From the NCBI GenBank assembly GCA_977020255.1, contig CDROCS010001028.1, positions 186,001 through 250,000 of the forward strand: DNA of 64,000 bases, written 5' to 3'. Of the stretch, positions 7,249 through 52,078 are shown piece after piece (the stretch's first letter is position 1; every line of letters starts with the position of its first letter). The notes below the pieces were generated by a model. The model saw only the letters and a program-made list of their open reading frames with translations, did not search any database and was not told the origin of the DNA. Source of the DNA: Obrimoposthia wandeli (lineage: Eukaryota). A program made the position numbers and the translations under genes.

Positions 7249-7262
7249 AACGGGATCTCACA

Positions 7263-8591
7263 TTAGTCTAATTGATCCATGGTTTTCCATAAACGCTGTG
7301 CCACTTTGCTGGCTTCTGCATAAATGGGCGCGATATCAAACGGGAATGCACGATCTTCGTATACGAAGCGCCCTTCCACTATCACACTATTCACGTTACC
7401 CGCATTCATACCAAAAGCGACATGACCTGCAAGGTTATCAGCAACAAATGGCGTTGGGCTGGTGTAATCCAGGATTGTTAAATCAGCCTTATTGCCTGCT
7501 TCAAGTCGACCGAACTTAGCACCAAAGTTACGGGCTAAAATCTCGTTACCATTCCAGAGGTTTTTCATGAAACTATCTGGCCATAACGGACCACCAGCAT
7601 CACGGTGTTTAAAGAACGAGAACTTCAATTCTTCAAGCATATCCGCCCCTATTCCATCGGTGCCTAAAGCGACATTTTTGAAACGGGTAAGCTTGCTGTT
7701 ATAGCCCACATTATTGTTCATGTTTGAACGTGCGTTATGCACTAAGAAACCATCTTTCGCATTTAGAATATCGATATCACGATCAGATAAGAACAAGCCG
7801 TGTGCTAGCAAGGTTTTCTCGTTAATCAGCCCGAAGCTATCTAAACGCTCGACAATATCTTGACCATAATGATGGTGGCTGTGCGTGACGTCGTAGCGAT
7901 CTTCTGCCACATGCACATGAATACCACGCCCTGTTGCTTGTACAGCTTCGGCCATCATGGCTAAGCCGTCGTTAGTTACCGTAAACGGTGCATGAGCACC
8001 AATATGGGCTTCAACTAAATACGGTTCGGTGCCTTCTTCTTTTGCACGATCAATCAGCTGAGCAAAGGCGATATTTTCTTCGACACCCGCCATCATTTCT
8101 TTCATGCCGCCATTACGATCTGTGGTCTCAAAACATGTCATACCGCGAAGACCTGCTTTGATGAAACCTTTACGCATCGTACTGAGTGAACCACCAATGT
8201 AATTCGGTGAAGCATGGTGATCGATAACCGATGTACAGCCACTTTTAATTGCTTCTAGCGAACAAATTAAACCGCTGTAATACACCGCTTCTTCATCTAA
8301 GGCGCGATCCATACGCCACCATAGATTCTTCAAAATCGAAATAAAATCAGGGCTTGGTTGAATATCAGCCATTACGCCACGGGCTAACCCTGAGTAGAAA
8401 TGGTTGTGTGAACACACCAGACCTGGCATAACGAGCTTGCCATGCATCTCTTTTACGATGGCATCTGGGTATTTCACTGAAAGATTAGCGCCAACTTCTT
8501 TAATTGTGCTGCCATCAATCGCAATATCGACCCCTTCTTTAATAAATGCAGGTTCAAATTGCACAGCAGTTGCGTTTTTAAGTAATAACAT
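7263..8591 (-). CDS. ssnA: Metal-dependent aminohydrolase SsnA
   Basis: CSHNHFYSGLARG, DHHASP, GTDGIG; follows ygfK as in enterobacteria. Confidence 0.93.
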   Translation of the reverse strand: MLLLKNATAVQFEPAFIKEGVDIAIDGSTIKEVGANLSVKYPDAIVKEMHGKLVMPGLVCSHNHFYSGLARGVMADIQPSPDFISILKNLWWRMDRALDEEAVYYSGLICSLEAIKSGCTSVIDHHASPNYIGGSLSTMRKGFIKAGLRGMTCFETTDRNGGMKEMMAGVEENIAFAQLIDRAKEEGTEPYLVEAHIGAHAPFTVTNDGLAMMAEAVQATGRGIHVHVAEDRYDVTHSHHHYGQDIVERLDSFGLINEKTLLAHGLFLSDRDIDILNAKDGFLVHNARSNMNNNVGYNSKLTRFKNVALGTDGIGADMLEELKFSFFKHRDAGGPLWPDSFMKNLWNGNEILARNFGAKFGRLEAGNKADLTILDYTSPTPFVADNLAGHVAFGMNAGNVNSVIVEGRFVYEDRAFPFDIAPIYAEASKVAQRLWKTMDQLD

Positions 8592-15100: not shown

Positions 15101-16341
15101 TCGAAGGATTCATAGTGACCAACGAAATAGTTGATTTTCCCCGCCAGTTTGTAATTACCTGCTTTCATCAGCGCAGAAGCATCACATGGCTCAATTTGGT
15201 CGAGAATGTCCGGGTTATCACCGGTGATGACGTGATCCCAAACTTGTCGGCCGTTGTCGAACTCTTCGCATACGAACGCTTTCCACTGTTCAATGCCTGT
15301 GCCCCAGATGTAATAGATATCGCTGTGTTCGTCCTCTTCTTCCTCTTTATCTTCAACAATTTGACGACCTAAATAGTCTTCAATTTCGATTTTCAGATCG
15401 GCGGCGGCATCATCGGCTGAGCCATCAATGAACATCGCTTTGCTCATGGCCTCACCCTTTTCATCTAAGTCGTAGCATTCTGTACCGCTATCGGTTTCGA
15501 CAAGAGACAGAACGATGCTGCGTATAGGATCTTCGTTGTAGTTACGCGGGTCATCGGTGTATTGCAGATAATCTAGCGCAGCAAAGCGCTCCTTGAGCAT
15601 TTGCTTGAATGTGGCAAATTCTTCTGGTTGGCTACGGAAAGTTTCAAGTAAAGACTGTGATTGGTTCTGCCCCATCGCATCGTTTTGTTCATCGTATGAG
15701 GTGGCTGCTAACGTGAACATCTTGGCGCGCGCCATGTGGTTGTCGCAGTAGCAGAAGGCTTTGAGCATGTAGTGGCTGTAACCGTGATGGCTAACTACGA
15801 TAGCAAGAACCTCTTCACCGAATGGTGCATGCTCCGTATCCCAGTAAGGCACAATGTAGCTGGCTAAAAGATAAGTGTATTGAGGGTATTTTAACGCCAA
15901 CATAAACATTGGGGTTAAGCCCAATACTTCGGTATCAGAAATCCACATACCTGATGAATCATTAACGCGGCGAGAAACGGTATTCAGCATGATTGCGGTC
16001 TGTTCGAGTTCAGCTTCTAATTCTGGGTGCAGTAAAGCACGCATGAAGAATGCCGTCTCTGGATCCACGCAGCGATCATTGAGCTTTTGTTCAGAAGAGA
16101 GTTTTTCAACATCTCTACCGTAGAAGGTAAAAATGGTTTTAGCGACAGAGTCTTCAAGCAAGTCAGCAATGCTGTCATCACTATTCTCTTCTAGGGCGAA
16201 AGTAACGTGGCAATGAAAATCGTAGAACGCACCTTCGTGCTGAATAAGCTGCCGATAAGACTGCAGACCTTGGCGTAGTGATTCAACATTTTTAGGGTTG
16301 TAGGAGATAGTTAGAGCTGAGGGATTTTCTAATACAGACAT
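12181..16341 (-). CDS. Large acidic protein of unknown function (possible C-terminal DUF3859-like and DUF4241-like domains)
   Basis: Uninterrupted 1386-aa ORF, very Asp/Glu-rich; TFGMRIGY...VHHP...IESKTFHV and GSINI...D.KDP...ELRLSEKTPKHW segments resemble those DUFs by eye. Confidence 0.8.
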   Translation of the reverse strand: MSVLENPSALTISYNPKNVESLRQGLQSYRQLIQHEGAFYDFHCHVTFALEENSDDSIADLLEDSVAKTIFTFYGRDVEKLSSEQKLNDRCVDPETAFFMRALLHPELEAELEQTAIMLNTVSRRVNDSSGMWISDTEVLGLTPMFMLALKYPQYTYLLASYIVPYWDTEHAPFGEEVLAIVVSHHGYSHYMLKAFCYCDNHMARAKMFTLAATSYDEQNDAMGQNQSQSLLETFRSQPEEFATFKQMLKERFAALDYLQYTDDPRNYNEDPIRSIVLSLVETDSGTECYDLDEKGEAMSKAMFIDGSADDAAADLKIEIEDYLGRQIVEDKEEEEDEHSDIYYIWGTGIEQWKAFVCEEFDNGRQVWDHVITGDNPDILDQIEPCDASALMKAGNYKLAGKINYFVGHYESFDSELEHIIYDLIADWTLNGDDDEEPNEAEERFKLFRMLDVIYCWNNKQGFDPNFIDKMVNEYEFFSDKEFMTRYNGDWKALFFHCVESFSGYSSNVELSEATTLYKMSLEHRDEVKKIIENGDFPQEHPEFPQEQPRETILGLCASIAHFDQLNGTKDTLNQYVLTVLNEHLVAAVYDSIAQNSEFVCAPKVPEWQYEEPEAAVLNQIKQDWLVVEQYFNGEHDDTEAALVNFEKYHRRSDKDTDLFRVQPRYCYLRDYDNKAQKLLLAAQVLSKHAESPIQKFAERFVELWLRIAPTKTCRMLAYFYNISRFGNVDADELHQQNQKLVNQMAGITDVGATAYMVENLISEVPSGADYHVVFALLFKQYQDEMALPEEQRVLHQALKVILQHCTQIFMAQLHKFNPELAPEYFENTLVNIIPLRVRQRIEDTIHDDRELSDEEKHDIEVTRQYASLKTTATKEQVDQLVKIMESRYIEDFCTPWGEAEVGFLFWYTADVLKDNLLQIYIHHSEMDISDLHGNSDTTQQRWLCERAYALGMSKIKLFEFIVEEDWTDCLDIFPDQLELAPLTKELSTEDLHALLVELAKLGNYEPLIATFINHSSRRIRDLIAEINAGRYSKKDSDSIEVVDFGIFAEGGTPEQIEAAEQEQTAEEEGFVSIHSLEHRKETLLIEAEVGRTFGMRIGYFSDDRPEEELPKTINLKVRVHHPYIHSHDGYLSEWDIELSLDCRSYVGWTFSHKSLCVPGIYRIDIVDGESNIIESKTFHVVEMRSILTDDLVERYQNDALTQQHMGSINIHDNELNIIDVKDPCGTLNLGHRLSNNLVNVYSYSENNKLAFCELRLSEKTPKHWYVAPNQLRPFIEKRIKGKQLLLGSPSATSCALANPSQWQRELGAKLPIKLFQPDQAQADSVLAIHLQRLGFRLLLGYSNEGELCRILMAPQKVGLLRRLLLRMMTKLARKTIEDKGAPKTL

Positions 16342-17416: not shown

Positions 17417-17629
17417 TTAGAGAATCGCACGAACGACTAGGCTATGAGCATACTCAGGGCTACCACACGAACAGAGAAAAACTTAAGCGAGGTGCGGTTA
17501 ACTTGTGTAATTTCAGGATTATATGCTGAAAAAGTCATCAGACCGCTGTTTAATAGGGAGCGCTATCCGTATACTAAATACGCATTACGAATATAAGCAG
17601 TACGTGTTTATTATAAAAAGGAAATTTTC

Positions 17630-19489
17630 TTGAAGTTATTGAAACATAAAATAATATGCGGCTGTATAGCTGCTTGCGCTGTCATGACTGTATCTCTGAC
17701 CATTTCTTCTGCTAATAGCATTGATGAACTAACCGAAATTGGCATTAATTCTAGAGCAAACATTGCATCAGATCTTGTCTCTAAAAACTTGAGTGATTGG
17801 GTTGAAACGAAAAAAAGAGCTTTAGACTCTACTTCATTTAAGGGCAACATTAGTGACTCACTTAAGCAGAGTAAAATTTCTGGCGACTTTGATGCTGTGT
17901 ATGTGGGGGGAGAAGATGGCCTCTATATAGCCACATATGACGAGCCAGTAAGTAGCTCGTATGACCCAAGAACTAGAGGCTGGTACCAATCTGCAAAGTC
18001 GCAAGGGAAAGCGATTATAACCTCCGCCTATATGGGTTCGACGAACAAAATGCTCATGGTTACAATGGCCAAGCCTATATCAATGAGTAATAACTCTTCA
18101 GGGGTTATTGGGGTAGATATTCTGATTGACACACTAATCCAAGACATAACCTCTATTGATGTTGGCAAAAATGCTAAAGTCATGCTGATTGACGGGGAGA
18201 ATAATACCTTTCTAGCTCACTCTAAAAAGTCGATGGTTCTATCTAAAATTCAAAACTACACTCCTGAATTTACTGACTCAGTTATTAAGTCGAGAGATGC
18301 TATCAATATAAAAATACAGGGGGAAGAGAAAAGGATTTCTTTCAAGAAGATACCTAATACCAATTGGTTTGTAGCTGTCGAGTTTGATATGGCGACTGAA
18401 GAAGGATTTCATGATCAGTCTATTATCAATCTGATTATCGTATCTATAATCGTATCCCTTTTGGCTTGCGCTCTTGTTACTTTTGTTATCTCTTCCCTAT
18501 TTGCAAGAATTAATGGCGTAGCTGTAGCGCTTGAAGAAATTGTTTCTGGCGATGGCGATTTAACTAAGAAGATCAATATTCAAAAAGATGATGAGATTGG
18601 TAAGCTAGCTATGGGCGTTAATCGTTTCATTGATAATCTTAATGTGATGATTACTAGAATAGGCGTTATCTCGAAAAGTCTAAATCATCAGGCTGAAGAA
18701 GTGGCTGCTGGAGCATTAGAAAGAAGCCAGCAAATCAGCACGCAGCAAGATGAGATAAATATGGTTGCTACAGCGATAAACGAGATGGCGATGGCGACTC
18801 AAGAGATTTCTAGTAATGCCGAGTCAACATCTTCAAACTCGGTTAGCGCAGTGGCAAACGCTGAAGACGGAGCGAAACAGGTATCAAAGACTCAGCAATC
18901 TATATCTAACCTAGAGTCTAATGTCCAAGAGTCTGTTGATATCATCAAAGATCTTGAGACGCACGGAAATTCAATTAATACCATTCTATCTACCATTCAG
19001 GGGATTGCAGAGCAGACTAACCTACTAGCTCTAAATGCAGCTATTGAAGCAGCAAGAGCTGGGGAACAAGGGCGAGGCTTTGCCGTTGTTGCTGATGAAG
19101 TTCGCGTTCTTAGTCAAAACACTCAGAAATCTACTCAAGAGATACATCAGATGATCGAGACCCTACAATCTACGACCAAAGAAGCTGTCCGAATTATGGG
19201 CGAGAGTAGCAACCTTGCTATTAGCAGTGTTAGTGACTCCAACGACGCAGCATCTAGCCTTTCTGAAATCAAAGAGTCAATTCAGCAAATCAGCGATATG
19301 TCGGCTCAAATTGCTACAGCGGCAGAAGAGCAGTCAGCGGTTACTGACGAGATAACGAAGAATACTCAGGGGATTAGAGACGTATCTGATTCTTTGGCTA
19401 TTAGAGCTACTGAGGCAGCAGAGCAAGCGAGTGATCTATCTAGTTTGGCTGGTGAATTATCAGATCAGGTAGGACAATTTAAGGTTTAA
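17630..19489 (+). CDS. Methyl-accepting chemotaxis protein with dCache sensor
   Basis: TM-dCache(YDPRTRGWY)-TM-HAMP; [34 protein letters not shown]. Confidence 0.95.
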
Positions 19490-19945: not shown

Positions 19946-20650
19946 TTACGCGTTATTCATCACATTATCGAGGTGATGGCGCATTTCACGTTCAGCAAGA
20001 TCAGGGTTGCCTTGCTGAATGGCTTTGAAGATTTCGACATGGTGCTCGCAACTAATCTGATGCAGCTTAGCAAATGTTTCTGGGTTTCGAGAGCGAATCA
20101 ACCACTGTACTAAGGATTCATAAATCGTAGTCACCATTGGATTACCCAAAATTTCAGTAATCGTACGGTGGAATGCAATATCCGTGTCGATAAAACGATC
20201 ATAATTATCGACTTGCGCTAAGTTGTTTTCTAACGCAACAGAAAGCTTTTCAACATCTTCTTCAGTTCTGACTCGAGCAGCTTCACGTACCACAGCGATT
20301 TCAAACAATTGTCTAAGATGTTCGAACTGCATCTTCTCTTTATCTTGTGACAATAAACCAATAGCAATACCTGATAGACCACTAACGATCGTTTGAGTAC
20401 AAGGACGAGTAACACGCGTCTTTTCGCCACTATTGATTTCAACTAAGCCTTTTTGAGACAGTTTTTGCAAGGCTTCACGAACAGACGGACGCCCCACGCC
20501 AAACGCAGTCATAAGCTCTCTTTCTGAAGGCAAAACATCACCTTCTTTAAACGTGTTATCTAAAATTAATCTTTCGATTTCATCGGTCACAAAATCCGAA
20601 AGCTTAACCTTCTTTAGGGGTTTCAGTGTTAAATTGTCAAGCGTTGACAT
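19946..20650 (-). CDS. nanR: GntR/FadR-family regulator, NanR-like
   Basis: LPSERELM..FGVGRPSVREAL..L..KGLVEINSGEKTRV.RP and FEHLRQLFE closely parallel E. coli NanR. Confidence 0.8.
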   Translation of the reverse strand: MSTLDNLTLKPLKKVKLSDFVTDEIERLILDNTFKEGDVLPSERELMTAFGVGRPSVREALQKLSQKGLVEINSGEKTRVTRPCTQTIVSGLSGIAIGLLSQDKEKMQFEHLRQLFEIAVVREAARVRTEEDVEKLSVALENNLAQVDNYDRFIDTDIAFHRTITEILGNPMVTTIYESLVQWLIRSRNPETFAKLHQISCEHHVEIFKAIQQGNPDLAEREMRHHLDNVMNNA

Positions 20651-20702
20651 AACCAATCCTTATTAGCACATTGCTGTGTTAAGTGCATAATATCTTAAAA
20701 CT

Positions 20703-21686
20703 TTACTGGTCAAAACCAGGAATCAATGCTTTTTGTGCTTGCCGCGCTTTTTTCAAACGTTCCACTGGTACACTCTCGAATGGAAATCGCATGGTTGGTG
20801 TAATGCAGCTCCATATACCCATGGTAGCCATAAACTTATCGACAGCCGCATTACAATACCCTTCTTCAAGTATAAACGGTGCAATTTCTTCATTCATGAA
20901 TTGCTGTATACGTTGTTCAGTTTCAAGCGCCTGTGGATCTAACATTAAACACTGCTGAGTCCATATTTGTGTTGCTTTCGGGCCTAAACAACAGACGTTT
21001 GAGTATGCGCCTTTTGCTCCAACATACGCATCGGTCGCGAGAAAATGACCCGCAACAAAAATAGACGCCACTTGCGGTAATCCTGTAGCAGCGATTTCAT
21101 CAGTGATTCTTGGCAGCTTAAAACCTACTACAGTATCAATCTCATCAAATATAGTGCGAAGTTGTTCCGCGGTTAAACACACTTTAGCGTGAGGAGGATT
21201 GTATAAAATAATGGGTATACCTTGGCACACGCTTTCCACTTTTCGGAGGAAGATCAATGCAGTTTGAGTATTACACGGAAACCAATTTGGTAAAATCACT
21301 TGAACTGCCGTCGGCTGCAGAGTCGCTGCAAATTGCGCACGCCGAACCGCATCTTGTGGGTGGCAATGAGATGCTCCAATTTGAAACGGCATACCAACGA
21401 CACGACATTTCGTCGCGAGCAACTCACTGATACGCTCGAACTCTTCTTCAGTTTGGGTATAAAACTCCCCAGCCGTCCCATTGGAATAAATACCATCTAC
21501 ACCCGCAGCGATGAAATAATCAATCTGCTCGGCCAGCAGCGTATAATTAATAGCTTCATTTTCTATTGGTAACAATAATGTTGCCCAGTTACCTTTAATA
21601 GTTGCAGCGCTTTCTTTCACTCTTTTTTTTTCATTCATTGCTACATCAATAGTTGAAGGCGCATGCGTTTCTGTTGTCATATTCAT
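20703..21686 (-). CDS. DHDPS/NAL-superfamily class I aldolase, non-NanA subgroup
   Basis: SNGTAGEF, ILYNPP, GFK Schiff-base Lys; ATGA overlap with the upstream gene. Confidence 0.85.
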   Translation of the reverse strand: MNMTTETHAPSTIDVAMNEKKRVKESAATIKGNWATLLLPIENEAINYTLLAEQIDYFIAAGVDGIYSNGTAGEFYTQTEEEFERISELLATKCRVVGMPFQIGASHCHPQDAVRRAQFAATLQPTAVQVILPNWFPCNTQTALIFLRKVESVCQGIPIILYNPPHAKVCLTAEQLRTIFDEIDTVVGFKLPRITDEIAATGLPQVASIFVAGHFLATDAYVGAKGAYSNVCCLGPKATQIWTQQCLMLDPQALETEQRIQQFMNEEIAPFILEEGYCNAAVDKFMATMGIWSCITPTMRFPFESVPVERLKKARQAQKALIPGFDQ

Positions 21687-22147
21687 AGCCAATCTGCCTT
21701 CACTTTGATCACGATTTTTTCAATGGCGCTAGGTGTTTCAACGCAAAGCATCGGCCTATGCCATTCGCCAGGAAAAAAGGTGACGCATTGATGCACATAC
21801 AAAGTAAAAACTTGTTCATTAGCAATATCCGATTGTAATGCGGCATCATTATCAGCATCAAAATTCAGCATATTGTCCACATCTACGGTCGCAAGAGGCG
21901 CGGCGTACATCTCTTGCCCTGCTAGCACAATATGGACATCGATATAGCGGCCATGAATTTCTGACAATGCGTCATCCAATAGCTTTGTCGTACTACTGAT
22001 TCGATTAACGAAAACATTCTCACCGTCGATCACATTGATGCCTGTTGCAAACTGCATAGGATCTAGTGACATCACATCGAGAATAATACGTTCAAGGGCT
22101 GAAGGCGTGCTTTTGGCGGTAATGGTAGGAATCGTTGTTAAAATCAT
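21683..22147 (-). CDS. YhcH/YjgK/YiaL (NanQ-like) family protein
   Basis: EIHGRYIDVHIVLAGQE, FFPGEWHRP, KIVIKV. Confidence 0.88.
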   Translation of the reverse strand: MILTTIPTITAKSTPSALERIILDVMSLDPMQFATGINVIDGENVFVNRISSTTKLLDDALSEIHGRYIDVHIVLAGQEMYAAPLATVDVDNMLNFDADNDAALQSDIANEQVFTLYVHQCVTFFPGEWHRPMLCVETPSAIEKIVIKVKADWL

Positions 22148-22342
22148 GATGTATTAGCAGATTAACTGCCATCCTCACTGTCATATTAGAAGGTTATTTT
22201 TATTCGTTTTTTGATAGTTACTTTTTGCCAATAGCCATGCTTTGGTAAATATTATTATCAAATGTTCACCGTGCATTGTCAGTCACAAGCACACGGTGAA
22301 CTTAAGGGGTAAATTTTCTGACTAGTTAAAGCTACTTATCTC

Positions 22343-23608
22343 TTAGAGCAACATATTAGGTAAGAACAACACGAGTTGCGGGAAGAAGATAATCAGCAGT
22401 AGAACGGCAATCAGAGGAATTAAGAACACAATCACTGAACGCGCTAAGACCTCATAAGGAATATTACCGACCTTAGATACCACAAAGAGTGATACCCCCA
22501 TCGGTGGTGTCAAAATCCCGAGCATCATATTCAAGACCACAACCACACCGAAATGCACAGGATCTATACCCAGCTGAACAGTAATTGGTAACAGAATAGG
22601 AACCAGAATCAGCAACAATGCCAAGGTTTCAATGAATGCGCCCAAAATGAATAGCATCACAGAAACCATTAGCAAGAACACTATTGGTGAATCTGTTACC
22701 TGCAAAAATAATTCGGCAGCTTTCATTGGTATATCTTCTTTGATAATCAGATAGCCAAATAAACTCACACCACCAATCAAAAACCCGATAACAGCTGAAG
22801 TATTTACGGTTTCATGAATCAAACGTACCAAGGTGCTAAACGTCAATTCTTTGTAAACAAAGAAACCCAAAAACATGGCATACAATGACGCGACAACAGC
22901 GGCTTCTGTTGGCGTAACAATACCCGAGAAAATACCGCCAATGATGATCACTGGTGTCAATAAAGCCAAGAATGCTTCTTTAAATGAAGAGAAAATCATC
23001 TTCATCGATGCACGCGGGTAAACCTTGTAGTTTTTCTTTTTCGCAATGATATAAACCATCACCATTAAGGCTACGGTACATAACAATGCAGGTACAATCC
23101 CCGCCAAGAATAAAGCACCAACAGATGCACCAGACATCACACCGTAAATTACCATTGGAATGCTCGGTGGCATCAATGGACCTATCACACTTGATGCTGC
23201 AGTAATCGCACCTGAGAAACCATCATCATAGCCTTCATCACGCATAGCTTTAATTTCAAGCTGCCCTAACCCACCAGCATCAGCGTGGGCAGATCCTGAC
23301 ATTCCCGAGAACAACAAACTCGCTAAGATATTTACATGGCCTAATGACCCCGTAAAGTGACCCGTTAAGTTACGGGCAAAGTTGAACATCTTGTCGGTGA
23401 TACCTGCCGAATTCATTAATAACCCGCTGAAGATGAAAAAAGGCACAGCCAGCAGTGGGAATGAATTCAAACCAGAAATGATTTTTTGTGGAGAGAGTGC
23501 AATTCCCGAGTTCAACAGTAAATAAGCAATGGAGACGATATACAGCGTAAAAGCGACAGGCATACCGACAGCCAACAATGCTCCCCAGCCCGAAAAAATA
23601 CCTAACAT
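22343..23608 (-). CDS. TRAP transporter large permease (DctM/SiaM-like)
   Basis: SFPLLAVPFFI, SGMSGSAHAD, PPSIPMVIYG, TPTEAA, TPPMG. Confidence 0.95.
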   Translation of the reverse strand: MLGIFSGWGALLAVGMPVAFTLYIVSIAYLLLNSGIALSPQKIISGLNSFPLLAVPFFIFSGLLMNSAGITDKMFNFARNLTGHFTGSLGHVNILASLLFSGMSGSAHADAGGLGQLEIKAMRDEGYDDGFSGAITAASSVIGPLMPPSIPMVIYGVMSGASVGALFLAGIVPALLCTVALMVMVYIIAKKKNYKVYPRASMKMIFSSFKEAFLALLTPVIIIGGIFSGIVTPTEAAVVASLYAMFLGFFVYKELTFSTLVRLIHETVNTSAVIGFLIGGVSLFGYLIIKEDIPMKAAELFLQVTDSPIVFLLMVSVMLFILGAFIETLALLLILVPILLPITVQLGIDPVHFGVVVVLNMMLGILTPPMGVSLFVVSKVGNIPYEVLARSVIVFLIPLIAVLLLIIFFPQLVLFLPNMLL

Positions 23609-23617
23609 AATAAATCC

Positions 23618-24139
23618 CTATTTATCCGTAATTTTCATTAATGGGGAAAGTTGCTTTTTGTTCACGCGCATATCCTTTAATGCCGCGACAGAGGTGCCGA
23701 CATTCAATAATGATTTAATCAGAATCAGAGTGAAACCCAACGGTACTGCCATATACAAGACAGACATTTGCACATCCATGGTGATAGAACCTAGACGGTC
23801 CATACGTTGAGCGAATATATAGCCACGATAAACAATGACAACAGAGGTAGCTGCAAATATTAGGTGAATCATAATATCTAATACGTGTTTCGCAGATTCA
23901 CTCAGACGGTTTGGCACTATATCGATAGCAATGTGATCTCGACGTGACACTGCTTCACTTGCGCCCACAAAAATGATGTAGATATATAACCATCGGGAAA
24001 GCTCTTCAGTCCAAGGAATTCCAATTGAAAAGAAATAGCGACTCACAATCTGAACCGTCAGTACCAATAACATTGCAATAAACAGCGAAACTGAAATGTA
24101 TTTTTCCATCAGTTCCATTTTTCTTATGAGGTTTTTCAT
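23618..24139 (-). CDS. TRAP transporter small permease (DctQ/SiaQ-like)
   Basis: QIVSRY...PWTEELSRW, HIAID; four TM segments. Confidence 0.92.
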   Translation of the reverse strand: MKNLIRKMELMEKYISVSLFIAMLLVLTVQIVSRYFFSIGIPWTEELSRWLYIYIIFVGASEAVSRRDHIAIDIVPNRLSESAKHVLDIMIHLIFAATSVVIVYRGYIFAQRMDRLGSITMDVQMSVLYMAVPLGFTLILIKSLLNVGTSVAALKDMRVNKKQLSPLMKITDK

Positions 24140-24221
24140 TTTTCCATCACCATTAAACGGGCAGCAACATCATATGCTTACCACCCTACTCAGTATGATT
24201 GAGCTGCTGTATCAGGTATCG

Positions 24222-25187
24222 TTATTGTGTATCGATCAATGTTTGTGTGAAGTTTTCACCAAACTGCTTATTTAATTGTGCGTAGTACGGTTTCATCGCT
24301 ACACGGAATGGGGCTAAGTCAGGATAGGTGACTGTCACACCGGCTTCTTTAAACGTTGCTAAGTCTTTCTCTGTGCTAGCTGTAATCAATTTTTCTGCTT
24401 CTTCCCCTCCAACAGCTAAGGCTTTTATCAGCCAATCTTGCTCTTGCTTAGAAAGATCATTCCAACGATCACCTGAAATAGAAATTGTTTGGTCTTGCAC
24501 CACGTGGTTAGTCATTGCGAGATACGGTTGTACTTCGTAGAACTTCATTGCTTCAATAGAAGAAATTGGGTTCTCTTGCCCATCAACGGCATTGGTTTGT
24601 AGTGCAAGATACACTTCTGCATAAGCGATAGGAGATGGAATCGCCCCTACTCCTTTAGCGTAATCAATCAAAGCTTTAGCGTTTGGAGTCCGCAGCTTCA
24701 TACCTTTCATGTCTTCAATGGAATTAATTGGACGGTTAGAGCTCGTTTCACGTATACCAAAGAACCAACTATCGATCGGCTTAAGATTAAATTCAGTTTC
24801 GAGTTCTTGACGCGCGTCCATGCCCCAAGGGCTGTTGAAAATGGCAGAAAGGTGTTTGTAATCACGTACAAGGTAAGCGGTTTCTAAAGCACCAAGACGA
24901 GGCAGATATTGCGCATAGCCACCAAAAACTTGCATCGACATGTCCAACTCACCTAAAGACACTTGCTCTAGCATTTCATGTACGTTGCCAAGTTGCCCGC
25001 CCGCGTAAAGGCGTAATGTCATCTCTCCGCCTGAAATCGTCTTCAGTTCATCAGCCGCCTTTACCATGCCGTGGTAAATCGGACTATTGTAAGCTTCATT
25101 AAAACCCACGTTCAATTGAGTTTCAGCAGACACGTTTGCAGCAAATAATGCAGTGGCAACCATGCTTAGAGTAAAGAGCTTTTTCAT
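24222..25187 (-). CDS. TRAP substrate-binding protein (DctP/SiaP-like)
   Basis: Signal peptide, GIRETSS, KLRTP, AEVYLALQTNAVDGQENP, EVQPYL..TNHV. Confidence 0.92.
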   Translation of the reverse strand: MKKLFTLSMVATALFAANVSAETQLNVGFNEAYNSPIYHGMVKAADELKTISGGEMTLRLYAGGQLGNVHEMLEQVSLGELDMSMQVFGGYAQYLPRLGALETAYLVRDYKHLSAIFNSPWGMDARQELETEFNLKPIDSWFFGIRETSSNRPINSIEDMKGMKLRTPNAKALIDYAKGVGAIPSPIAYAEVYLALQTNAVDGQENPISSIEAMKFYEVQPYLAMTNHVVQDQTISISGDRWNDLSKQEQDWLIKALAVGGEEAEKLITASTEKDLATFKEAGVTVTYPDLAPFRVAMKPYYAQLNKQFGENFTQTLIDTQ

Positions 25188-25257
25188 ATTATGTCCTTAT
25201 TAGTATGTAGAGTGTTTCTCGTTATTGTTGTAGAGGTAGAACTATTCTTTCTGCGTA

Positions 25258-26187
25258 TTAATTCTTCACAAAAAATACGCCATGTTCTAACTGTTCACCG
25301 TCGAAAATTCGGCGAATTTGTCTTACGTACACATCGATTTTTTTTATATTTTCATTGCCACACCCACCACCTGTATGTTGGGTTAGGTGTATATTCGGTG
25401 TTGTCCATAACGGTGAATGAGCAGGTAGCGGTTCTTGCTTCGTGACATCTAAACAGGCAGTAAATGTACTGTCTGCTAATGCTTTTGCTACCAAGTCATC
25501 TTCATTCACGACTTGACCTCGACCTACGTTAACCACCATAGCTCCAGCACGCATCTTGTTGAACACTTCACGGTCCAGTAGATTATGTGTGGTATCCGTG
25601 GCTGGAATGGTTGATATCAAAATGTCGCAATGCGCCACTGCTTCAATCAAACCATTCTTTCCTTTTGCTTTCATAGCTGTAGTGTCAAAGCTATGTATAG
25701 TCGCCCCAAAAGCGTCGAACAAGGCAGCCGCTTGCTTACCAATACTGCCATACCCCAAGATCAAGATGTCAGCTTCACCGACAAGACGTTTAGTAAAACG
25801 GATAGCGTCTTTTTCCCATACGCTTGACGCTTTAGCTGTCTGCAATGCAGGTAGTTGACGATAAACACTCAAGACATTCGCGACAATTTCTTCTGCAACA
25901 GGAGCGGAAAAGAAGCCCTGTAGGTTGCATACTGTGATATGGCGGTTTTCTAGCCAGTCATAACCATTAAAATTATCGATCCCGACAGAATCCAATAAAA
26001 TGGTTGCCAGGCACGGCATGTCATTAATCCAATCTGTTGGAATATTACCGATAGCAATATCGGCATCTTTGGCTCTTTTAAACTCATTACTGCCATCATT
26101 AAAATGACAAGTCGCGTTAGCTGAGAGTTGCTGTGTTAAATAATTCGCTTCACGTTCGTTCAATACAGGATGAATATAAATGTTCAT
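25258..26187 (-). CDS. D-isomer-specific 2-hydroxyacid dehydrogenase
   Basis: GYGSIG, VNVGRG, LDVT..EP, TQH motifs. Confidence 0.9.
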   Translation of the reverse strand: MNIYIHPVLNEREANYLTQQLSANATCHFNDGSNEFKRAKDADIAIGNIPTDWINDMPCLATILLDSVGIDNFNGYDWLENRHITVCNLQGFFSAPVAEEIVANVLSVYRQLPALQTAKASSVWEKDAIRFTKRLVGEADILILGYGSIGKQAAALFDAFGATIHSFDTTAMKAKGKNGLIEAVAHCDILISTIPATDTTHNLLDREVFNKMRAGAMVVNVGRGQVVNEDDLVAKALADSTFTACLDVTKQEPLPAHSPLWTTPNIHLTQHTGGGCGNENIKKIDVYVRQIRRIFDGEQLEHGVFFVKN

Positions 26188-26244
26188 AAGGCCCTTCGAT
26201 TAATCGGCGCATTCAATAACGGAGGTTCACATTGAGTGGTTAAA

Positions 26245-27459
26245 TTACGCTTTCACCCAATGACGATGACTGTCTTCTAATTGTTGTAAGCCATCTTCCA
26301 TTGGAAAACAGTGGTACAGCGCATCGTTGGTATAAGGAAATTGGGCTTCAATATCATCGGTTAACGTGACACCTAAGCCAATATCGTCACCTAAATGGAA
26401 GTGGCCATCGCTAATGCGAGATTCGAGATTGCACATGGCGTTGCGCAGTTCAAAATGAGGCATCGGATATTCAATCAATGAACATCCTGTGGCAAACGCG
26501 GCTACATAATTCGCCATCATCGCAACCGGCCCACCCCAAGAGTGCACAACAGGATTCACGCTACGTTGCTGGGCGTATTCACAAACGGCAATCGTGTCGC
26601 CAATCCCACCTAAAACAGAAGCGTCGGGTTGCACCACGTTGTAATAATTGGCATCAATACGGTCGAACAACTCTTCTTTAGTGGTAACAATTTCGCCACC
26701 AGCAACCACAATGCCCTCTTGCAAAGCTAACAAAGGCAATTGAGTCAGTTTGTCGAGACCTAAGCACTCTTCAACAAACACCAACTCTTCACCGGTTTCA
26801 TGCTGAATATGGTCGCAAAAAGCTTTTACTTGCTCGGCAGTTTGCCCCTCAATCGTGAGATTCTGTGTCATATCAACAGCAACACGAATACCATATTGAC
26901 GACCAGCTTCAATGGTCCAAATAGTTTTAGCCGCTTGATGATGGCGCGCGCGAATTTTGATCGTTTGAATACCACGTTGTACTAGCTGTTCAAGCTCTTG
27001 GGCCATATATTGCGGATGTAACGAATCCCCTCCAGACCCATACATAGCAATTGACTCTACTTTTTTACCACCGAACAGTTCTACTGCTGGGATCTCACGC
27101 GCACGGGATAAGGCATCCACCAATGCAATTTCGATTGCCGAAATAACATGCTGCGCCGCACCTTGTAACGACCAATATGCTGTAACAGTTTTGGCTTTTG
27201 CCAACACATCACCGTAACCGTTACTGATGTCATCACCCGTAATAGCAGTGCCAACCAAGCGTGCAATGCTGGTAAATACATCCGGTGCAAAAACACCTAG
27301 ATACCCTTCTCCCAGCCCTTTTACACCATTATCCAGAGTGATCTCGACCATGGAGCATCCACGAATACCATTCGGCAAATGCAAGGCATTCTCTGCACAG
27401 CCTTCAAACCCGTAAGGTGCGCTCAATAACACTGGACGAACATTGACGATCGTGGCCAT
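26245..27459 (-). CDS. Enolase-superfamily (mandelate racemase subgroup) enzyme, probable acid-sugar dehydratase
   Basis: KIR, VDMTQ, EEC, GGE metal ligands, QPDAS..GG, VHSW. Confidence 0.88.
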   Translation of the reverse strand: MATIVNVRPVLLSAPYGFEGCAENALHLPNGIRGCSMVEITLDNGVKGLGEGYLGVFAPDVFTSIARLVGTAITGDDISNGYGDVLAKAKTVTAYWSLQGAAQHVISAIEIALVDALSRAREIPAVELFGGKKVESIAMYGSGGDSLHPQYMAQELEQLVQRGIQTIKIRARHHQAAKTIWTIEAGRQYGIRVAVDMTQNLTIEGQTAEQVKAFCDHIQHETGEELVFVEECLGLDKLTQLPLLALQEGIVVAGGEIVTTKEELFDRIDANYYNVVQPDASVLGGIGDTIAVCEYAQQRSVNPVVHSWGGPVAMMANYVAAFATGCSLIEYPMPHFELRNAMCNLESRISDGHFHLGDDIGLGVTLTDDIEAQFPYTNDALYHCFPMEDGLQQLEDSHRHWVKA

Positions 27460-28370
27460 TACACTAATCCTTTTAATTGAGGGAGTATTGCAGCACCGCG
27501 CACACCACTCGAATCACCGTGTTCCGCTTTCACCACTTGTGTAGTAACAGCTTTACTGAAGGTGTAACGGCTCAATTTGTCTTGTACCAAGGCATAAATA
27601 CAATCTTGATTGGACATACCGCCACCCAGAACAATGACTTCTGGATCAATGATATTCACAATGCTACCAAGTGAACGCGCTAGTTGGTCGGTATAGGTAT
27701 CGATATGCTGCAAGGCGTCTACATCACCTTGTTCGGCTTGTTCAAAAATAGTTTTGGCTTTTAACGGCACATGCTGAGCAGCATAGGTACGCTCAAAGCC
27801 CGTACCAGAACAAAACGACTCGATACAATTTGTTGACCCGCAATAGCACGTAACCGCTTCACCATCTTGCTCTAGCGTATAGCTGGGCAATGGGTTGTGC
27901 CCCATCTCGCCACCCAAGTTATTTAAGCCAGTTACAACGTCACCATTAATGATAATGCCTGAACCACACCCCGTACCGATAATGACGGCAATACAAGAGT
28001 TTTCAGCATGTTTTGCCGCACCGGATTTAAACTCAGAAATAGCTAAACAATCTGCATCATTAGCAATCGCAATTGGTAAGGCGATGTGTTTTTTCAAGTC
28101 TCCAATGAAATCTTCACCATTGAGATATAACAAGTTGGAGCCCTGCATACGCTGCGTATCTTTATTCAACGAACCGCAACAACCAATGCCCACCGATATC
28201 GGGGTTTGATCGCTTGATAACGCTTCAATGGTTGATACAACCGCATCAAGAAAAGCAGCATAGTTATCTTTTGGCGTCGCTACCCTGACCTTATCGATCA
28301 GGGTGTACGTTGAAGGGTCAAGGCTGACCCCTTCAATCTTTGTTCCGCCTATGTCTAGGCCTATTAGCAT
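27459..28370 (-). CDS. ROK-family sugar kinase, Mak (manno/fructokinase)-like
   Basis: DIGGTK, ANDADC, IIGTGCG, GEMGHNPLP, CYCG...CIESFCSGTGF. Confidence 0.9.
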   Translation of the reverse strand: MLIGLDIGGTKIEGVSLDPSTYTLIDKVRVATPKDNYAAFLDAVVSTIEALSSDQTPISVGIGCCGSLNKDTQRMQGSNLLYLNGEDFIGDLKKHIALPIAIANDADCLAISEFKSGAAKHAENSCIAVIIGTGCGSGIIINGDVVTGLNNLGGEMGHNPLPSYTLEQDGEAVTCYCGSTNCIESFCSGTGFERTYAAQHVPLKAKTIFEQAEQGDVDALQHIDTYTDQLARSLGSIVNIIDPEVIVLGGGMSNQDCIYALVQDKLSRYTFSKAVTTQVVKAEHGDSSGVRGAAILPQLKGLV

Positions 28371-29242
28371 ACACCCGCCTCAATCAGTGCATTCAAGGCT
28401 GCTTTGTGCTCATCAGTCACAACATTCAATGGACGGCGGCAATGTTCGTTTTGAATAATGCCTTTTTGCTTCAATACATATTTCAAACCCGGAATCACAC
28501 CCGCACCGACTAAGGCATCAATTAACACATTCGCTTCACGTTGCAAGGCTGTTGCTTGCTGCGCATTATTCGTGAAAATTGCGGCTTGAATATCAATCAT
28601 GCGCTGTGCTTGAATATTATAAGTAGAGCCAATACCACCATTTGCACCTGCAACAAGGCCAGAAGCCAATATTTCATCAAACCCGTTGAATACTGTTTTA
28701 TCAGGGTTTTGACGAGTAACTTGTTCCATTTGGTATAAGTTGGCAGACGTTTGCTTAAGAGCGACAACACCATCAATATTCAACAATTCATTAATTTGAT
28801 CACCCGATAGATTCATACCCGCGAAAGCTGGGAAGTTATAAACAATCATGGGTTTACCCGCAGCTTGAATCACATCACTGTAATGCTTCTTCAGCTCATT
28901 GAATGCCACCGGGTAGTAAAACGGCGTGACCGCTGAAATCGCTTGATAAGGCATCGCCCCTGCTGCGCGTGCCAAAATTTCACTTTTCCTCGTCGATATA
29001 TCACCTACATGCGCGATTAACGTCATATCTGCAGTCGCAGCTTCTGCTGTTAGCTCAAGGGTCTGAATCCGCTCTTCGGTAGAACAAAGAAAAGCTTCTG
29101 CTGTAGAGCCGCCCACGTATAAACCGTCTAAGCCACTCTCACAGTTGAACTTCACTAACGATGCCAAGTCATCATGGTTAATCGTTTCATCGAGATTAAA
29201 AGGAGTCAGTGTTGCTGCGTATAAGCCTGAAAAATTCATCAT
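28364..29242 (-). CDS. nanA: N-acetylneuraminate lyase family aldolase
   Basis: YVGGSTAE, VYNFP, LKQTS, GFDE, GSTYN substrate-determining motifs. Confidence 0.88.
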   Translation of the reverse strand: MMNFSGLYAATLTPFNLDETINHDDLASLVKFNCESGLDGLYVGGSTAEAFLCSTEERIQTLELTAEAATADMTLIAHVGDISTRKSEILARAAGAMPYQAISAVTPFYYPVAFNELKKHYSDVIQAAGKPMIVYNFPAFAGMNLSGDQINELLNIDGVVALKQTSANLYQMEQVTRQNPDKTVFNGFDEILASGLVAGANGGIGSTYNIQAQRMIDIQAAIFTNNAQQATALQREANVLIDALVGAGVIPGLKYVLKQKGIIQNEHCRRPLNVVTDEHKAALNALIEAGVC

Positions 29243-29269
29243 ATTTCCAATTACAGAGGACTAAGTTTT

Positions 29270-29296
29270 GGTGTGCCTAGTATGCTGTTATACCAG
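29270..29296 (-). promoter_or_regulatory. NanR-type operator
   Basis: Minus strand CTGGTATAACAG-CATACTAGGCACA; the first 12 nt match the E. coli nanA operator start. Confidence 0.6.
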
Positions 29297-29306
29297 CTTC
29301 ATTTTC

Positions 29307-29322
29307 TGTGATTGAATTCACA
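29307..29322. promoter_or_regulatory. CRP-binding site
   Basis: Perfect TGTGA-N6-TCACA upstream of nanA. Confidence 0.75.
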
Positions 29323-29443: not shown

Positions 29444-29489
29444 AAGAGAAAAGGCAGCTTCATTACAAAGCTGCCAAGGCACTTATAAG
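29444..29489. repeat. 46-bp direct repeat, copy 1 (minus-strand terminator-like)
   Basis: AAGAGAAAAGGCAGCTTCATTACAAAGCTGCCAAGGCACTTATAAG; 43/46 identical to 47372-47417. Confidence 0.9.
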
Positions 29490-29898
29490 TAAAAATGAAA
29501 ATAGATTTCGATTAAAACAAGTCAGAATACGCCTTATTTTATAGAATATGAGCCAAATATGGGGGTGAAGCGACTGAGTTAGATGAAATAACTAACAAAC
29601 AAAAAGGTTATGCCGTGCTGAATTTAAACTGAGACAGCACAATTAGTTCTCAAGCAAAACGACTCAAGTGAGAATTATCAAGCAATGATGTGGGGGGATC
29701 AATAATGGGCAAGTTAGTTCAAAATAAGGCCCCAAAAAGAGCGCCTTCGATTACACTAGGACGGGGTGTTTTACGCAGTAAGATTCGGTCAGAAAATACT
29801 GCCCATAGTTGCTTTATCAATAATACAACTATGGGCAATCTTTATCGCTATCGATTAAGTTTCATACAACTCAACACGCAAGCAAGACGAGGCAATAA

Positions 29899-30618
29899 TT
29901 AGTATTGAGAGTCCTTCACGACTTTTTCACCATAAATTCCATTCTTAGGAATCGCTTTATAGCTAGAGTTCGCAGCTCGCATAATACGAATACCTTCCGC
30001 CCCCGCATCACGAGCAGAAATGATGTCACCATCAGAATCACCGTAATACAATTTGATGTTATGTTCCTTAATGAATGGAGTCTTGGTGTAAGCCGTTTTA
30101 CTGGATCCAGCAAAAATCACTTTGTGCATATTATTGATGCCAAAAGTGTCCTTCAGGTATTGTGTTGTCATTTCGCAATCAGACCCTGTACGACCAGTGA
30201 TAAAATAAATGTCATCACCACGCTCTTGGTGCATAGATATTAACTTCTGACCGATCGTTTTAGGTAAGCTGAACGCTTCCCATGCACAGTTCATCTTATC
30301 CCAGAATTGTGGTGACTGAAGGTAGCTGTAACCATTAGGCGAAAATACTTGCTGACCGCGATTAAAGCCTGGAGAGCTGAACAGAACCGTATCATCAATA
30401 TCAAAACCCACAGCCATCGGTGGTTTGTCCGCAAGGCTGGCTTTAATTTCTTTTACCGAGACCCAATTAAGCGGTACTGATTCGCCTTTTTGCATTACAT
30501 CGATCGAGCTATACCCAGTTTCTGTTCCGGGTGTTTTTGGATCTGCCTGTACAGACGTCGACACAAAGGCGCATGCCATTAAAGAGGAAAGTGCGAGGGT
30601 AAGTAATTTTGTTTTCAT
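29899..30618 (-). CDS. aphA: Class B acid phosphatase
   Basis: Signal peptide, GFDIDDTVLFSSP, YYGDSDGDI, RAANSSY. Confidence 0.93.
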   Translation of the reverse strand: MKTKLLTLALSSLMACAFVSTSVQADPKTPGTETGYSSIDVMQKGESVPLNWVSVKEIKASLADKPPMAVGFDIDDTVLFSSPGFNRGQQVFSPNGYSYLQSPQFWDKMNCAWEAFSLPKTIGQKLISMHQERGDDIYFITGRTGSDCEMTTQYLKDTFGINNMHKVIFAGSSKTAYTKTPFIKEHNIKLYYGDSDGDIISARDAGAEGIRIMRAANSSYKAIPKNGIYGEKVVKDSQY

Positions 30619-42543: not shown

Positions 42544-42825
42544 TTATTTTGATTTAGAAGTAATTGGAAATACTTTCTCTAAGTCTTTTGATGGACGTGG
42601 AATAACGTGTACTGCCACTAATTCACCTAAACGTTGAGCAACCACAGAGCCTGCATCTGTCGCAGCTTTACATGAAGCAACATCACCACGGATAAGCGCA
42701 ACAACATAACCTGAACCAATTTGTTGATAACCAACTAACTCAACACGAGCGGCTTTTACCATTGCATCAGACGCTTCAATCAACGCCGTTAAACCTTTAG
42801 TTTCTAAAATACCTAACGCATCCAT
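42544..42825 (-). CDS. eutM: BMC-H shell hexamer EutM (copy 2)
   Basis: [25 protein letters not shown]. Confidence 0.93.
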
Positions 42826-42848
42826 TTTTCTACCCTTCTATAAATAAG

Positions 42849-43178: not shown

Positions 43179-43217
43179 TTTATTTCCTTTAAATATCAGT
43201 CAGTTAAATTTATTAAA

Positions 43218-48679: not shown

Positions 48680-48688
48680 ATACCGTCC

Positions 48689-52069: not shown

Positions 52070-52078
52070 GCTTACTCC

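Follow-up and report, generated by a model that had tools for sequence, protein, structure and literature searches.

Bacterial sialic-acid use is described as cleavage by a lyase, followed by NanK and NanE (or by an epimerase and RokA) and then by NagA and NagB. The described systems closest to the locus reported here are the nan operon of Escherichia coli and the SiaPQM transporters of Vibrionaceae and Pasteurellaceae (Haemophilus influenzae, Vibrio cholerae, and Photobacterium profundum), which are of the tripartite ATP-independent periplasmic (TRAP) type. In addition, a Kdnase and an aldolase specific for deaminoneuraminic acid (Kdn) have been characterised in Sphingobacterium (Nakagawa et al. 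2022 and Kitajima et al. 1994, as cited in PMC10017367). A 2023 review notes that most work on the inner-membrane sialic-acid transporters characterised so far has concerned N-acetylneuraminic acid (Neu5Ac). The DNA analysed here, referred to as the window, is a stretch of 64,000 nucleotides (positions 186,001 to 250,000 of contig CDROCS010001028.1 in assembly GCA_977020255.1, deposited under Obrimoposthia wandeli). It carries a ten-gene cassette that is a second, non-canonical sialic-acid-type operon and behaves as a movable accessory. Comparative analyses suggest that the cassette serves the uptake and catabolism of a sialic-acid-like 2-keto-3-deoxy sugar acid other than Neu5Ac, most likely Kdn, and that a three-enzyme module has been grafted onto it; we give this combined reading an even chance of being correct.

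The cassette and the canonical nan systems

The cassette consists of ten intact, co-oriented open reading frames (ORFs) on the minus strand, spanning 19946-29242, as determined from the ORF list and from Pfam and NCBIfam profile searches. In the order of transcription, these encode a NanA-type lyase, a ROK-family sugar kinase, an enolase-superfamily enzyme of the mandelate racemase (MR) subgroup, a D-isomer-specific 2-hydroxyacid dehydrogenase, the TRAP subunits DctP, DctQ, and DctM, a YhcH protein, a divergent enzyme of the dihydrodipicolinate synthase (DHDPS) family, here called DHDPS2, and a GntR/FCD regulator. The yhcH gene is preceded by a 195-nt gap and a promoter-like site. No NanE, NagA, NagB, NanT, or phosphomannose isomerase (PMI) was detected by tblastn in the whole 64-kb window. 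An N-acylglucosamine 2-epimerase of the AGE family is encoded at 48689-49855, in a separate phosphotransferase system (PTS) operon. The gene families, their common orientation, and the absence of nanE, nagA, and nagB had been proposed in an earlier sequence-only reading of this DNA, together with a CRP site and a NanR box ahead of the operon, and all of these are borne out by the present searches.

The cassette resembles the E. coli nan operon in its NanA-type lyase, its GntR/FCD repressor, a GGTATA-repeat operator, a CRP site, and a protein of the YhcH family. In contrast to that operon, it has neither NanE nor a NanK-type kinase, a TRAP transporter stands in place of NanT, and the MR enzyme, the dehydrogenase, and DHDPS2 are additional. 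The lyase, of the sialic-acid (2-keto-3-deoxy-nonulosonate) type (28364-29242, minus strand, 292 amino acids), is 50% identical to E. coli NanA and scores 343 bits on the NCBIfam model NF003164, the cutoff of which is 281. It keeps S47, T48, Y137, K165, T167, G189, D191, E192, and S208, and the Schiff-base lysine, the tyrosine, and the GxDE and GSTYN residues of N-acetylneuraminate lyases are all in place. Since the residues that bind the polyol tail are all retained, the enzyme is expected to act on a long-chain 2-keto-3-deoxy acid that carries such a tail.

The kinase (27459-28370, minus strand, 303 amino acids; PF00480) is 43% identical to E. coli Mak, 38% to NagK, and 26-30% to NanK. Its best NCBIfam match is the Mak/fructokinase model, at 285 bits and under the cutoff of that model, and its nearest structures are those of NagK; on the NanK models it reaches 117-126 bits, versus cutoffs of 283 and 450. 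Identity and profile scores therefore agree with the earlier description of the kinase as Mak-like and set it apart from NanK; neither NanK nor NanE of the canonical nan operon is present in the cassette. The YhcH/DUF386 protein (21683-22147, minus strand, 154 amino acids; PF04074) is 29% identical to E. coli NanQ and scores 96 bits on the NanQ equivalog model, versus a cutoff of 160; it probably acts on a 2-keto sugar acid, either as an anomerase or by assisting ring opening.

The cassette appears to be controlled by CRP and a NanR-type repressor. A putative CRP-binding site, TGTGAATTCAATCACA (29307-29322, minus strand), is a perfect match to TGTGA-N6-TCACA and begins 80 nt ahead of the start of nanA. 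The same site is found in P. frigidiphilum, P. profundum, and P. indicum, two further loci (L007 and L016) have a near-identical copy, and a half-site is left in the Vibrio relatives. A candidate Nan box, that is, a NanR-type operator, is found at 29271-29294 on the minus strand (GGTATAACAGCATACTAGGCACAC) and contains one exact and two degenerate GGTATA hexamers, the spacing of which presumably matches that of the E. coli Nan box. Among 12 related Photobacterium and Vibrio loci, the core CTGGTATAACAG(G/C)(A/T)ATA is kept at the same place ahead of nanA in 10, a near form is present in L008, and none is present in L013. The Vibrio copies of the cassette have two full GGTATA repeats, and two minimal clusters described below (L085 and L086) have a related operator form, CTGGTATAACAGGTGTATAG. 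A loose Nan box pattern gave 5 matches in the window versus 2.4 expected, which is not above chance; the argument for the operator is thus one of position and conservation and not of match count. The predicted repressor itself (19946-20656, minus strand, 234-236 amino acids, with GntR and FCD domains) is 46% identical to E. coli NanR and scores 246 bits on the NanR subfamily model (cutoff 260), so that both a probable NanR-type repressor and the GGTATA-repeat operator of the canonical nan operon are represented. A terminator-like hairpin at 29475-29453 lies between the operon and the upstream gene.

The host of the cassette is a marine Photobacterium. The MR protein of the cassette is 96-97% identical to its homologues in P. 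frigidiphilum, P. profundum, and P. indicum, and all ten genes are syntenic in 11 Photobacterium and Vibrio genomes. P. profundum SS9 has a canonical nan cluster, encoding NanA, RpiR, NanE, NanK, an SSF transporter, YhcH, and SiaPQM (including the SiaP of structure 7t3e). By exact-sequence look-up, a canonical SiaP and the cassette binding protein are both present in P. frigidiphilum, P. indicum, and P. profundum 3TCK; similarly, both binding-protein types are on one contig in Vibrio sp. JC009. Since close relatives carry its binding protein alongside a canonical SiaP, the cassette is a paralogous system. The sequence-only reading had set the cassette apart from canonical nan genes and had called for a search for a separate canonical cluster, and such a cluster is what P. 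profundum SS9 provides. It had also held that its proposal would fail if nanE and nanK elsewhere completed ordinary Neu5Ac use and left the extra enzymes dispensable. Both genes do exist in relatives, but redundancy is disfavoured, because the maintenance of two complete transport and lyase systems points to a different substrate. The further claim that this was the top candidate for a novel system was overstated, as the cassette is not a new kind of system.

A minimal cluster in Vibrio sp. MACH09 and its relatives encodes a GntR regulator, the lyase, the ROK kinase, the TRAP transporter, and YhcH, and lacks the three extra enzymes. The genes next to the full cassette vary as well: they are an aga-type PTS cluster in P. 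profundum 3TCK, allantoin-type genes in another strain, and unrelated genes in the window. Because these neighbourhoods differ between close relatives, the cassette behaves as a movable accessory unit.

Transporter pocket, candidate substrate, and extra enzymes

The TRAP transporter comprises a SiaP-like solute-binding protein of the DctP family with an altered pocket (24222-25187, 321 amino acids), a small membrane subunit resembling DctQ and SiaQ (23618-24139, 173 amino acids; PF04290), and a large membrane subunit resembling DctM and SiaM (22343-23608, 421 amino acids; PF06808, 395 bits), all on the minus strand. It is similar to the SiaPQM systems in its three subunits, its clamp and hinge residues, and its large subunit, which is 60% identical to the canonical SiaM of P. 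profundum; the small subunit is 29% identical to the canonical SiaQ of the same species. The binding protein shares 45-48% identity with canonical SiaPs (48% with the crystallised P. profundum SiaP, 7t3e) but, unlike them, belongs to a separate clade with ten pocket changes, members of which coexist with canonical SiaP in the same species or genome. The pocket was compared with those of canonical SiaPs by alignment, with residues in H. influenzae numbering. The carboxylate clamp and hinge triad (R127, R147, N187, E186, and H209) are retained, and the protein thus has the DctP fold and the Arg147/Arg127/Asn187 clamp of SiaP in addition to its Q and M subunits. The clade-wide changes are A11E, D48N, D49V, R50H, T64S, F65M, A66Q, E67V, R70G, and N212Q. 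At A11, D49, E67, R70, and N212, the SiaP residues for Neu5Ac binding and the water network, the window protein has E31, V69, V87, G90, and Q231, respectively, so that all five are replaced. The same pocket replacements are found in the minimal-cluster clade of binding proteins.

Several of these positions have been studied in SiaP. The E67A substitution lowers the affinity for Neu5Ac about 1000-fold (PMC4089482), and A11N raises the Kd from 30 nM to 42 uM (PMC9749026). D49 holds the glycerol moiety and R70, and the acetyl group is packed by the F65/A66 backbone and the side chain at 214 (PMC11550005). The absence of SiaP residues important for Neu5Ac binding fits the leaning of the sequence-only reading towards a substrate other than Neu5Ac. 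The Vibrio SiaPQM of V. cholerae and V. vulnificus does not transport Kdn, and neither species grows on it (PMC4959520). Kdn itself has been reported from fish and microalgae (PMC7845648).

On the pocket changes, the type of kinase, and two PMI neighbours taken together, Kdn is the leading candidate substrate, and we put its probability a little short of even. The PMI genes adjoin the cassette in 2 of 12 Vibrionaceae loci. In Vibrio scophthalmi (L001), two type-I PMI genes that are 97.7% identical (6768-7961 and 17418-18611) lie one on each side of the cassette, and an upstream set encodes a PTS, a GH38 alpha-mannosidase, and a GH13 enzyme; the duplicated flanks suggest that the cassette was inserted or duplicated within a mannose-related locus. 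The single PMI beside the cassette in V. nomapromontoriensis is only 45% identical to those of V. scophthalmi. In the proposed pathway, the SiaP-like TRAP transporter would import the acid, YhcH would speed ring opening, and the NanA-type lyase would split the acid into pyruvate and a hexose (mannose, if the substrate is Kdn). The Mak-like kinase would then form the hexose 6-phosphate (mannose 6-phosphate), which would enter glycolysis through a PMI encoded elsewhere.

Three extra enzymes make up the module. The first is an enolase-superfamily enzyme of the MR subgroup (26245-27459, minus strand, 404 amino acids; MR_MLE_N and MR_MLE_C domains), probably an acid-sugar dehydratase. It belongs to a large family, the members of which are 42-50% identical to one another across many phyla. 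Residues invariant in 19 diverse members include K168, R170, D196, E230/E231, E256, D279, and H306. When roles were assigned by position, and not by structural superposition, these supplied the three acidic metal ligands, the His-Asp dyad, and the strand-2 lysine of the MR subgroup; the second lysine of the K-x-K motif is Arg170 (K-x-R). Its AlphaFold2 model has a pLDDT of 94, and the nearest neighbours in PDB and Swiss-Prot are acid-sugar dehydratases and cycloisomerases, with 18-24% identity and TM scores of 0.7-0.88. The enzyme is thus like the described D-arabinonate, D-galactonate, D-gluconate, and L-talarate/galactarate dehydratases and the galactarolactone and 3,6-anhydrogalactonate cycloisomerases in fold and in the positions of metal ligands and His/Asp. 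In contrast, its low identity to them, its K-x-R in place of the usual K-x-K, and its large family of its own set it apart. Among the characterised acid-sugar families (TalrD/GalrD, GalD, ManD, AraD, RhamD, Gci, and the 3,6-anhydrogalactonate cycloisomerase), no NCBIfam equivalog cutoff was reached (at best 94 bits versus a cutoff of 500), and the best weak matches are aldarate and aldonate dehydratases. Identity as a 3,6-anhydrogalactonate cycloisomerase, a galactarolactone cycloisomerase, or an L-fuconate dehydratase was ruled out by the 18-24% identity and by scores far under the cutoff. A role as racemase partner of the D-specific dehydrogenase is unlikely, because the second lysine of the K-x-K motif is an arginine.

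The second enzyme, the dehydrogenase (25258-26187, minus strand, 309 amino acids; PF02826, 131 bits), carries the GxGxxG motif and R223, E252, and H271, which are kept in 56 family members; it thus has the Rossmann motif and the Arg-Glu-His triad of D-2-hydroxyacid dehydrogenases. It reached no NCBIfam subfamily cutoff, and its sole PDB relative is 3hg7, the function of which is unassigned. The third, DHDPS2 (20703-21692, minus strand; PF00701, 47 bits), has an uncertain start codon, which leaves its length at about 307-329 amino acids; in relatives the gene is called with a start inside the window ORF. The equivalents of the catalytic tyrosine and lysine, Y164 and K192, are kept in 25 members, as expected of a probable Schiff-base enzyme. 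However, the GxDE and GSTYN motifs of NanA are replaced by AGHF and YSNV, and the NanA models give only 39-52 bits, so that it falls outside the lyase subfamily. Additional conserved residues are H109, R118, H168, K170, H216, and K286, and no close PDB relative was found. By comparison with PDB, Swiss-Prot, and NCBIfam, therefore, all three proteins belong to superfamilies but to no characterised family, and for the MR-dehydrogenase pair no characterised relative exceeds about 24% identity.

The distribution of the MR gene was surveyed in 80 loci, with one genome per species, of which 69 are from outside the Vibrionaceae. The dehydrogenase gene is present in 65 of the 80 loci; in 58 of these 65, it shares a strand with the MR gene and the two are no more than 150 nt apart. 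The module occurs in Vibrionaceae, Spirochaetota, Bacteroidota, Verrucomicrobiota, Planctomycetota, Chloroflexota, Deinococcota, Actinomycetota, and Alphaproteobacteria. At the loci from outside the Vibrionaceae, a NanA-type lyase (GxDE and GSTY) is found in 28 of 69, DHDPS2 in 17, and GH33/BNR proteins in 18; GH33, GntR/FCD regulators, and SSF transporters are the partners most often encoded in the same operon. When Streptomyces is set aside as well, the commonest partners are GH33, SiaT-like SSF transporters, and NanA-type lyases; the sequence of the GH33 representative marks it as a true sialidase homologue, and the SSF representative is nearest to the sialic-acid transporter SiaT. For instance, a compact operon of Opitutus encodes the lyase, the dehydrogenase, the MR enzyme, an MFS transporter, two GH33 proteins, and DHDPS2. 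A Brevinema metagenome-assembled genome (MAG) has the lyase, an SSF transporter, YhcH, the MR enzyme, the dehydrogenase, and DHDPS2, adjoined by a ROK gene and a lacto-N-biose phosphorylase gene.

Two loci bear on the Kdn system of Sphingobacterium, which is, as the cassette may be, a bacterial enzyme set dedicated to Kdn and not to Neu5Ac. A MAG labelled Sphingobacterium thalpophilum (L073) and a Chitinophaga MAG (L082) carry the same MR enzyme, dehydrogenase, and DHDPS2 together with a NanA-type lyase, an SSF transporter, and several GH33 genes. The cassette NanA and the Sphingobacterium-type lyase share only about 28-31% identity, and the Kdn reviews and literature searches consulted mention no transporter, kinase, or MR-dehydrogenase module for the Sphingobacterium system.

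Other loci differ in their contents. The Streptomyces block (e.g. 8004-20349 of L051) encodes DUF6807, the dehydrogenase, the MR enzyme, LacI, a GntR-PBP protein, an FAD oxidoreductase (PF12831), a GFO/IDH/MocA oxidoreductase, a CE4 deacetylase, and a GH38 mannosidase. In Tunicatimonas pelagia (L002, 3834-18221), a GntR regulator, a 433-aa protein of no assigned function, the lyase, the dehydrogenase, and the MR enzyme are neighboured by an MGH1-like GH63, a SusC/SusD pair, a DegT aminotransferase, an SDR protein, and GH3. Cyclobacteriaceae loci add FAD oxidoreductases, GH43, and a GH5/GH10-like protein, Polycladidibacter combines the module with another TRAP binding protein and an IlvD/EDD dehydratase, and sulfatases, PhyH dioxygenases, HpcH aldolases, and IlvD/EDD dehydratases recur among the remainder.

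The chemistry of the superfamilies is a guide to what the module might do. D-2-hydroxyacid dehydrogenases interconvert 2-keto and D-2-hydroxy acids; MR enzymes with a single catalytic histidine remove the proton alpha to a carboxylate and expel a beta leaving group, giving a 2-keto-3-deoxy acid; and DHDPS-type enzymes form a Schiff base with a 2-keto acid. The cassette dehydrogenase might therefore act on a 2-keto sugar acid whose 3-hydroxyl or other 3-substituent is still in place, reducing the keto group at C2; the MR enzyme would dehydrate the resulting aldonate to a 2-keto-3-deoxy acid, and NanA or DHDPS2 would cleave that acid into pyruvate (or hydroxypyruvate) and an aldehyde. In this way, the module would let the operon accept a related or modified form of its main substrate. 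This order of reduction, dehydration, and aldol cleavage is tentative, and we consider it doubtful. The same order of chemistry, with a reductase, a dehydratase, and a pyruvate aldolase, is known from the 2-ketogluconate route, KguD-Edd-Eda; this is an analogy only, with no homology to Edd or Eda implied, as the cassette dehydratase is of the enolase superfamily and the aldolase of the DHDPS family. Alternatively, DHDPS2 would release hydroxypyruvate, which the dehydrogenase would convert to D-glycerate and the MR enzyme to pyruvate.

An oxidative route from N-acetylmannosamine (ManNAc) was also considered, in which an aldose dehydrogenase, a deacetylase, and an FAD oxidase or aminotransferase would lead to 2-ketogluconate, followed by the dehydrogenase, the MR enzyme, and a 2-keto-3-deoxygluconate aldolase. 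It fits the extra genes of Streptomyces, Tunicatimonas, and Cyclobacteriaceae but was ruled out as a general explanation, since neither an aldose dehydrogenase nor a deaminase is encoded in the compact operons of Opitutus, Brevinema, and Photobacterium. For the same reason, the substrate of the dehydrogenase would most simply be the imported ulosonic acid or a 3-substituted variant of it.

No publication was found on the module or on a bacterial operon for Kdn uptake and catabolism, most subscription journals being outside the search. A single paper combined three of the enzymes by name, and its subject is the bifidobacterial L-fucose pathway. The literature searched thus agrees with the earlier notion of an undescribed pathway. 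The MR enzyme and the dehydrogenase, often with DHDPS2, may represent an undescribed enzymatic branch of sialic-acid-type (ulosonic acid) catabolism that handles a natural acid or modification outside current pathways, and the binding protein may be the first receptor of a TRAP system to be devoted to Kdn or a variant of this kind; we regard this as possible, with the balance leaning against it.

Alternative readings of the substrate and the module

Several observations weigh against a Kdn-type operon with a grafted module. The lyase scores above the cutoff of the N-acetylneuraminate lyase model, and the binding protein carries the NCBI name SiaP. Additionally, the 38% identity of the ROK kinase to NagK and the presence of an AGE-family epimerase 19 kb away make a Bacteroides-type Neu5Ac route possible. 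The cassette would then be an ordinary second operon for Neu5Ac or N-glycolylneuraminic acid, in which NanA yields ManNAc and the pathway is finished either by canonical NanE and NanK or by the AGE epimerase with the ROK protein as N-acetylglucosamine kinase, the extra enzymes being passengers or acting on a side product. The substrate residues of NanA, all of which are kept, and a NanR-like regulator with the same operator as E. coli NanR are what such an operon would have, and relatives do possess canonical nan genes. The epimerase gene would even adjoin the cassette if the island between two 56-nt repeats (see below) were absent; however, the AGE/PTS operon is not next to the cassette in relatives. 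Moreover, six SiaP residues important for Neu5Ac are lost, namely A11, D49, R50, E67, R70, and N212; at E67 and A11, one substitution is enough to weaken affinity about 1000-fold. Three species are unlikely to keep two full sets of transporter and lyase for the same substrate, and the linkage of MR enzyme, dehydrogenase, and lyase across phyla argues that the extra enzymes are not passengers. We therefore consider an ordinary Neu5Ac operon improbable.

The pocket itself is a second difficulty for Kdn. D49V, E67V, and R70G make the tail side less polar, which is not an obvious change for Kdn, whose glycerol tail remains; the tail side could indicate a deoxy tail, an N-acylated tail, or a shorter acid. 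To our knowledge, there is also no natural 3-hydroxy nonulosonic acid on which the dehydrogenase and MR enzyme could act, and the sole such sugar known to us is D-glycero-D-talo-octulosonic acid (Ko). The substrate might instead be another microbial or algal ulosonic acid, such as Ko or 3-deoxy-D-manno-octulosonic acid (Kdo), 3-deoxy-D-lyxo-heptulosaric acid (Dha), or an acid of the legionaminic or pseudaminic type. The dehydrogenase and MR enzyme would then trim a variant (e.g. Ko to Kdo), and the lyases would release pyruvate and a smaller aldose. The hydrophobic or smaller residues on the tail side suit such acids, and reduction followed by dehydration would, on chemical grounds, convert Ko to Kdo exactly; against this, Ko is rare in nature as far as we know. 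Kdo hydrolases are also sialidase-like, and the GH33/BNR neighbours are not necessarily true sialidases; some distant loci combine the module with GH43, GH5/GH10-like, pectate-lyase-like, fucosidase, and sulfatase genes. However, NanA keeps D191, E192, and S208, the residues that hold the glycerol tail when the acid has nine carbons, and the Mak-like hexokinase and the PMI neighbours fit a hexose and not arabinose or a 6-deoxy-diamino sugar. We assign this alternative a low probability.

A third difficulty concerns the module. The Streptomyces block has no lyase and no sialidase, and an MR-dehydrogenase pair without either nearby may mean that its substrate is not a nonulosonate. The MR enzyme, the dehydrogenase, and DHDPS2 might thus form an independent pathway for acid sugars or C3 acids that is only co-regulated with the rest of the cassette, acting on an aldarate or aldonate, or leading from hydroxypyruvate through D-glycerate to pyruvate (e.g. 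in the salvage of glycerate from mannosylglycerate). The weak matches of the MR enzyme are to aldarate and aldonate dehydratases, and the reduction of hydroxypyruvate is a classic activity of the 2-hydroxyacid dehydrogenase family. GH38 and GH63 both include mannosylglycerate hydrolases; GH38 accompanies the Streptomyces pair and, with a PTS, lies near the V. scophthalmi cassette, and an MGH1-like GH63 is present in Tunicatimonas, neighbours that the hydroxypyruvate and glycerate variant would fit. In Polycladidibacter, moreover, the module is accompanied by an IlvD/EDD dehydratase and by a TRAP binding protein of another type. In contrast, the cassette has one transporter only, so that a second substrate must use that transporter or be formed within the cell. 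The commonest partners beyond Vibrionaceae and Streptomyces are those of sialic-acid use (GH33, SiaT-like SSF transporters, and NanA-type lyases), and compact operons put the module between lyase and transporter. An independent pathway is, in our judgement, quite improbable.

Two further points temper the Kdn reading with its grafted module. The PMI linkage is a weak argument, since it is confined to 2 of the 12 loci. In addition, the evidence for expression is limited to 7 short contigs, which come from two metatranscriptome libraries of marine sediment, are 96-100% identical to the genes for the binding protein, the dehydrogenase, the MR enzyme, and the kinase, and may reflect DNA carry-over; two large RNA-seq runs, which are no valid test of expression, gave no reads.

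Genomic surroundings and significance

Upstream of the cassette, 56-nt direct repeats that are 89% identical (29444-29499 and 47372-47427) bracket aphA, encoding a class-B acid phosphatase (29899-30618), and the whole eut bacterial microcompartment locus, about 18 kb in all. This aphA-eut segment lies immediately ahead of the nan-like promoter and has the look of an island that was inserted or can be excised. The left repeat includes the terminator-like hairpin (29475-29453). At the far end of the eut locus, a 282-nt segment occurs twice (42561-42842 and 42914-43195, 75% identical, 353 nt apart).

The Man-family PTS operon at 48125-55546 encodes EIIA, B, C, and D, the AGE-family epimerase, and a cupin-type isomerase resembling glucose-6-phosphate isomerase (48125-48679); the same region has a 586-aa protein without a Pfam match (52510-54270) and a divergent LacI regulator (54479-55546). 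On the other side of the cassette, a methyl-accepting chemotaxis protein with a dCache_1 sensor (17630-19489) is convergent with the NanR-like gene and is not beside the cassette in relatives; that it senses the same sugar is a possibility. Farther along, a 1386-aa ORF (12181-16341) has as its only Pfam match a weak DUF3859 near its C-terminus.

If the cassette is indeed a Kdn-type system, it would offer a concrete transporter, lyase, and kinase to test, and would explain the possible use of Kdn by marine and fish-associated Vibrionaceae. The MR enzyme and the dehydrogenase represent two large enzyme families with no assigned function and are tractable targets. Finally, the occurrence of a dehydrogenase-dehydratase pair inside sialidase, transporter, and lyase operons of many phyla points to a step or substrate that has gone unrecognised in the breakdown of host and algal glycans.

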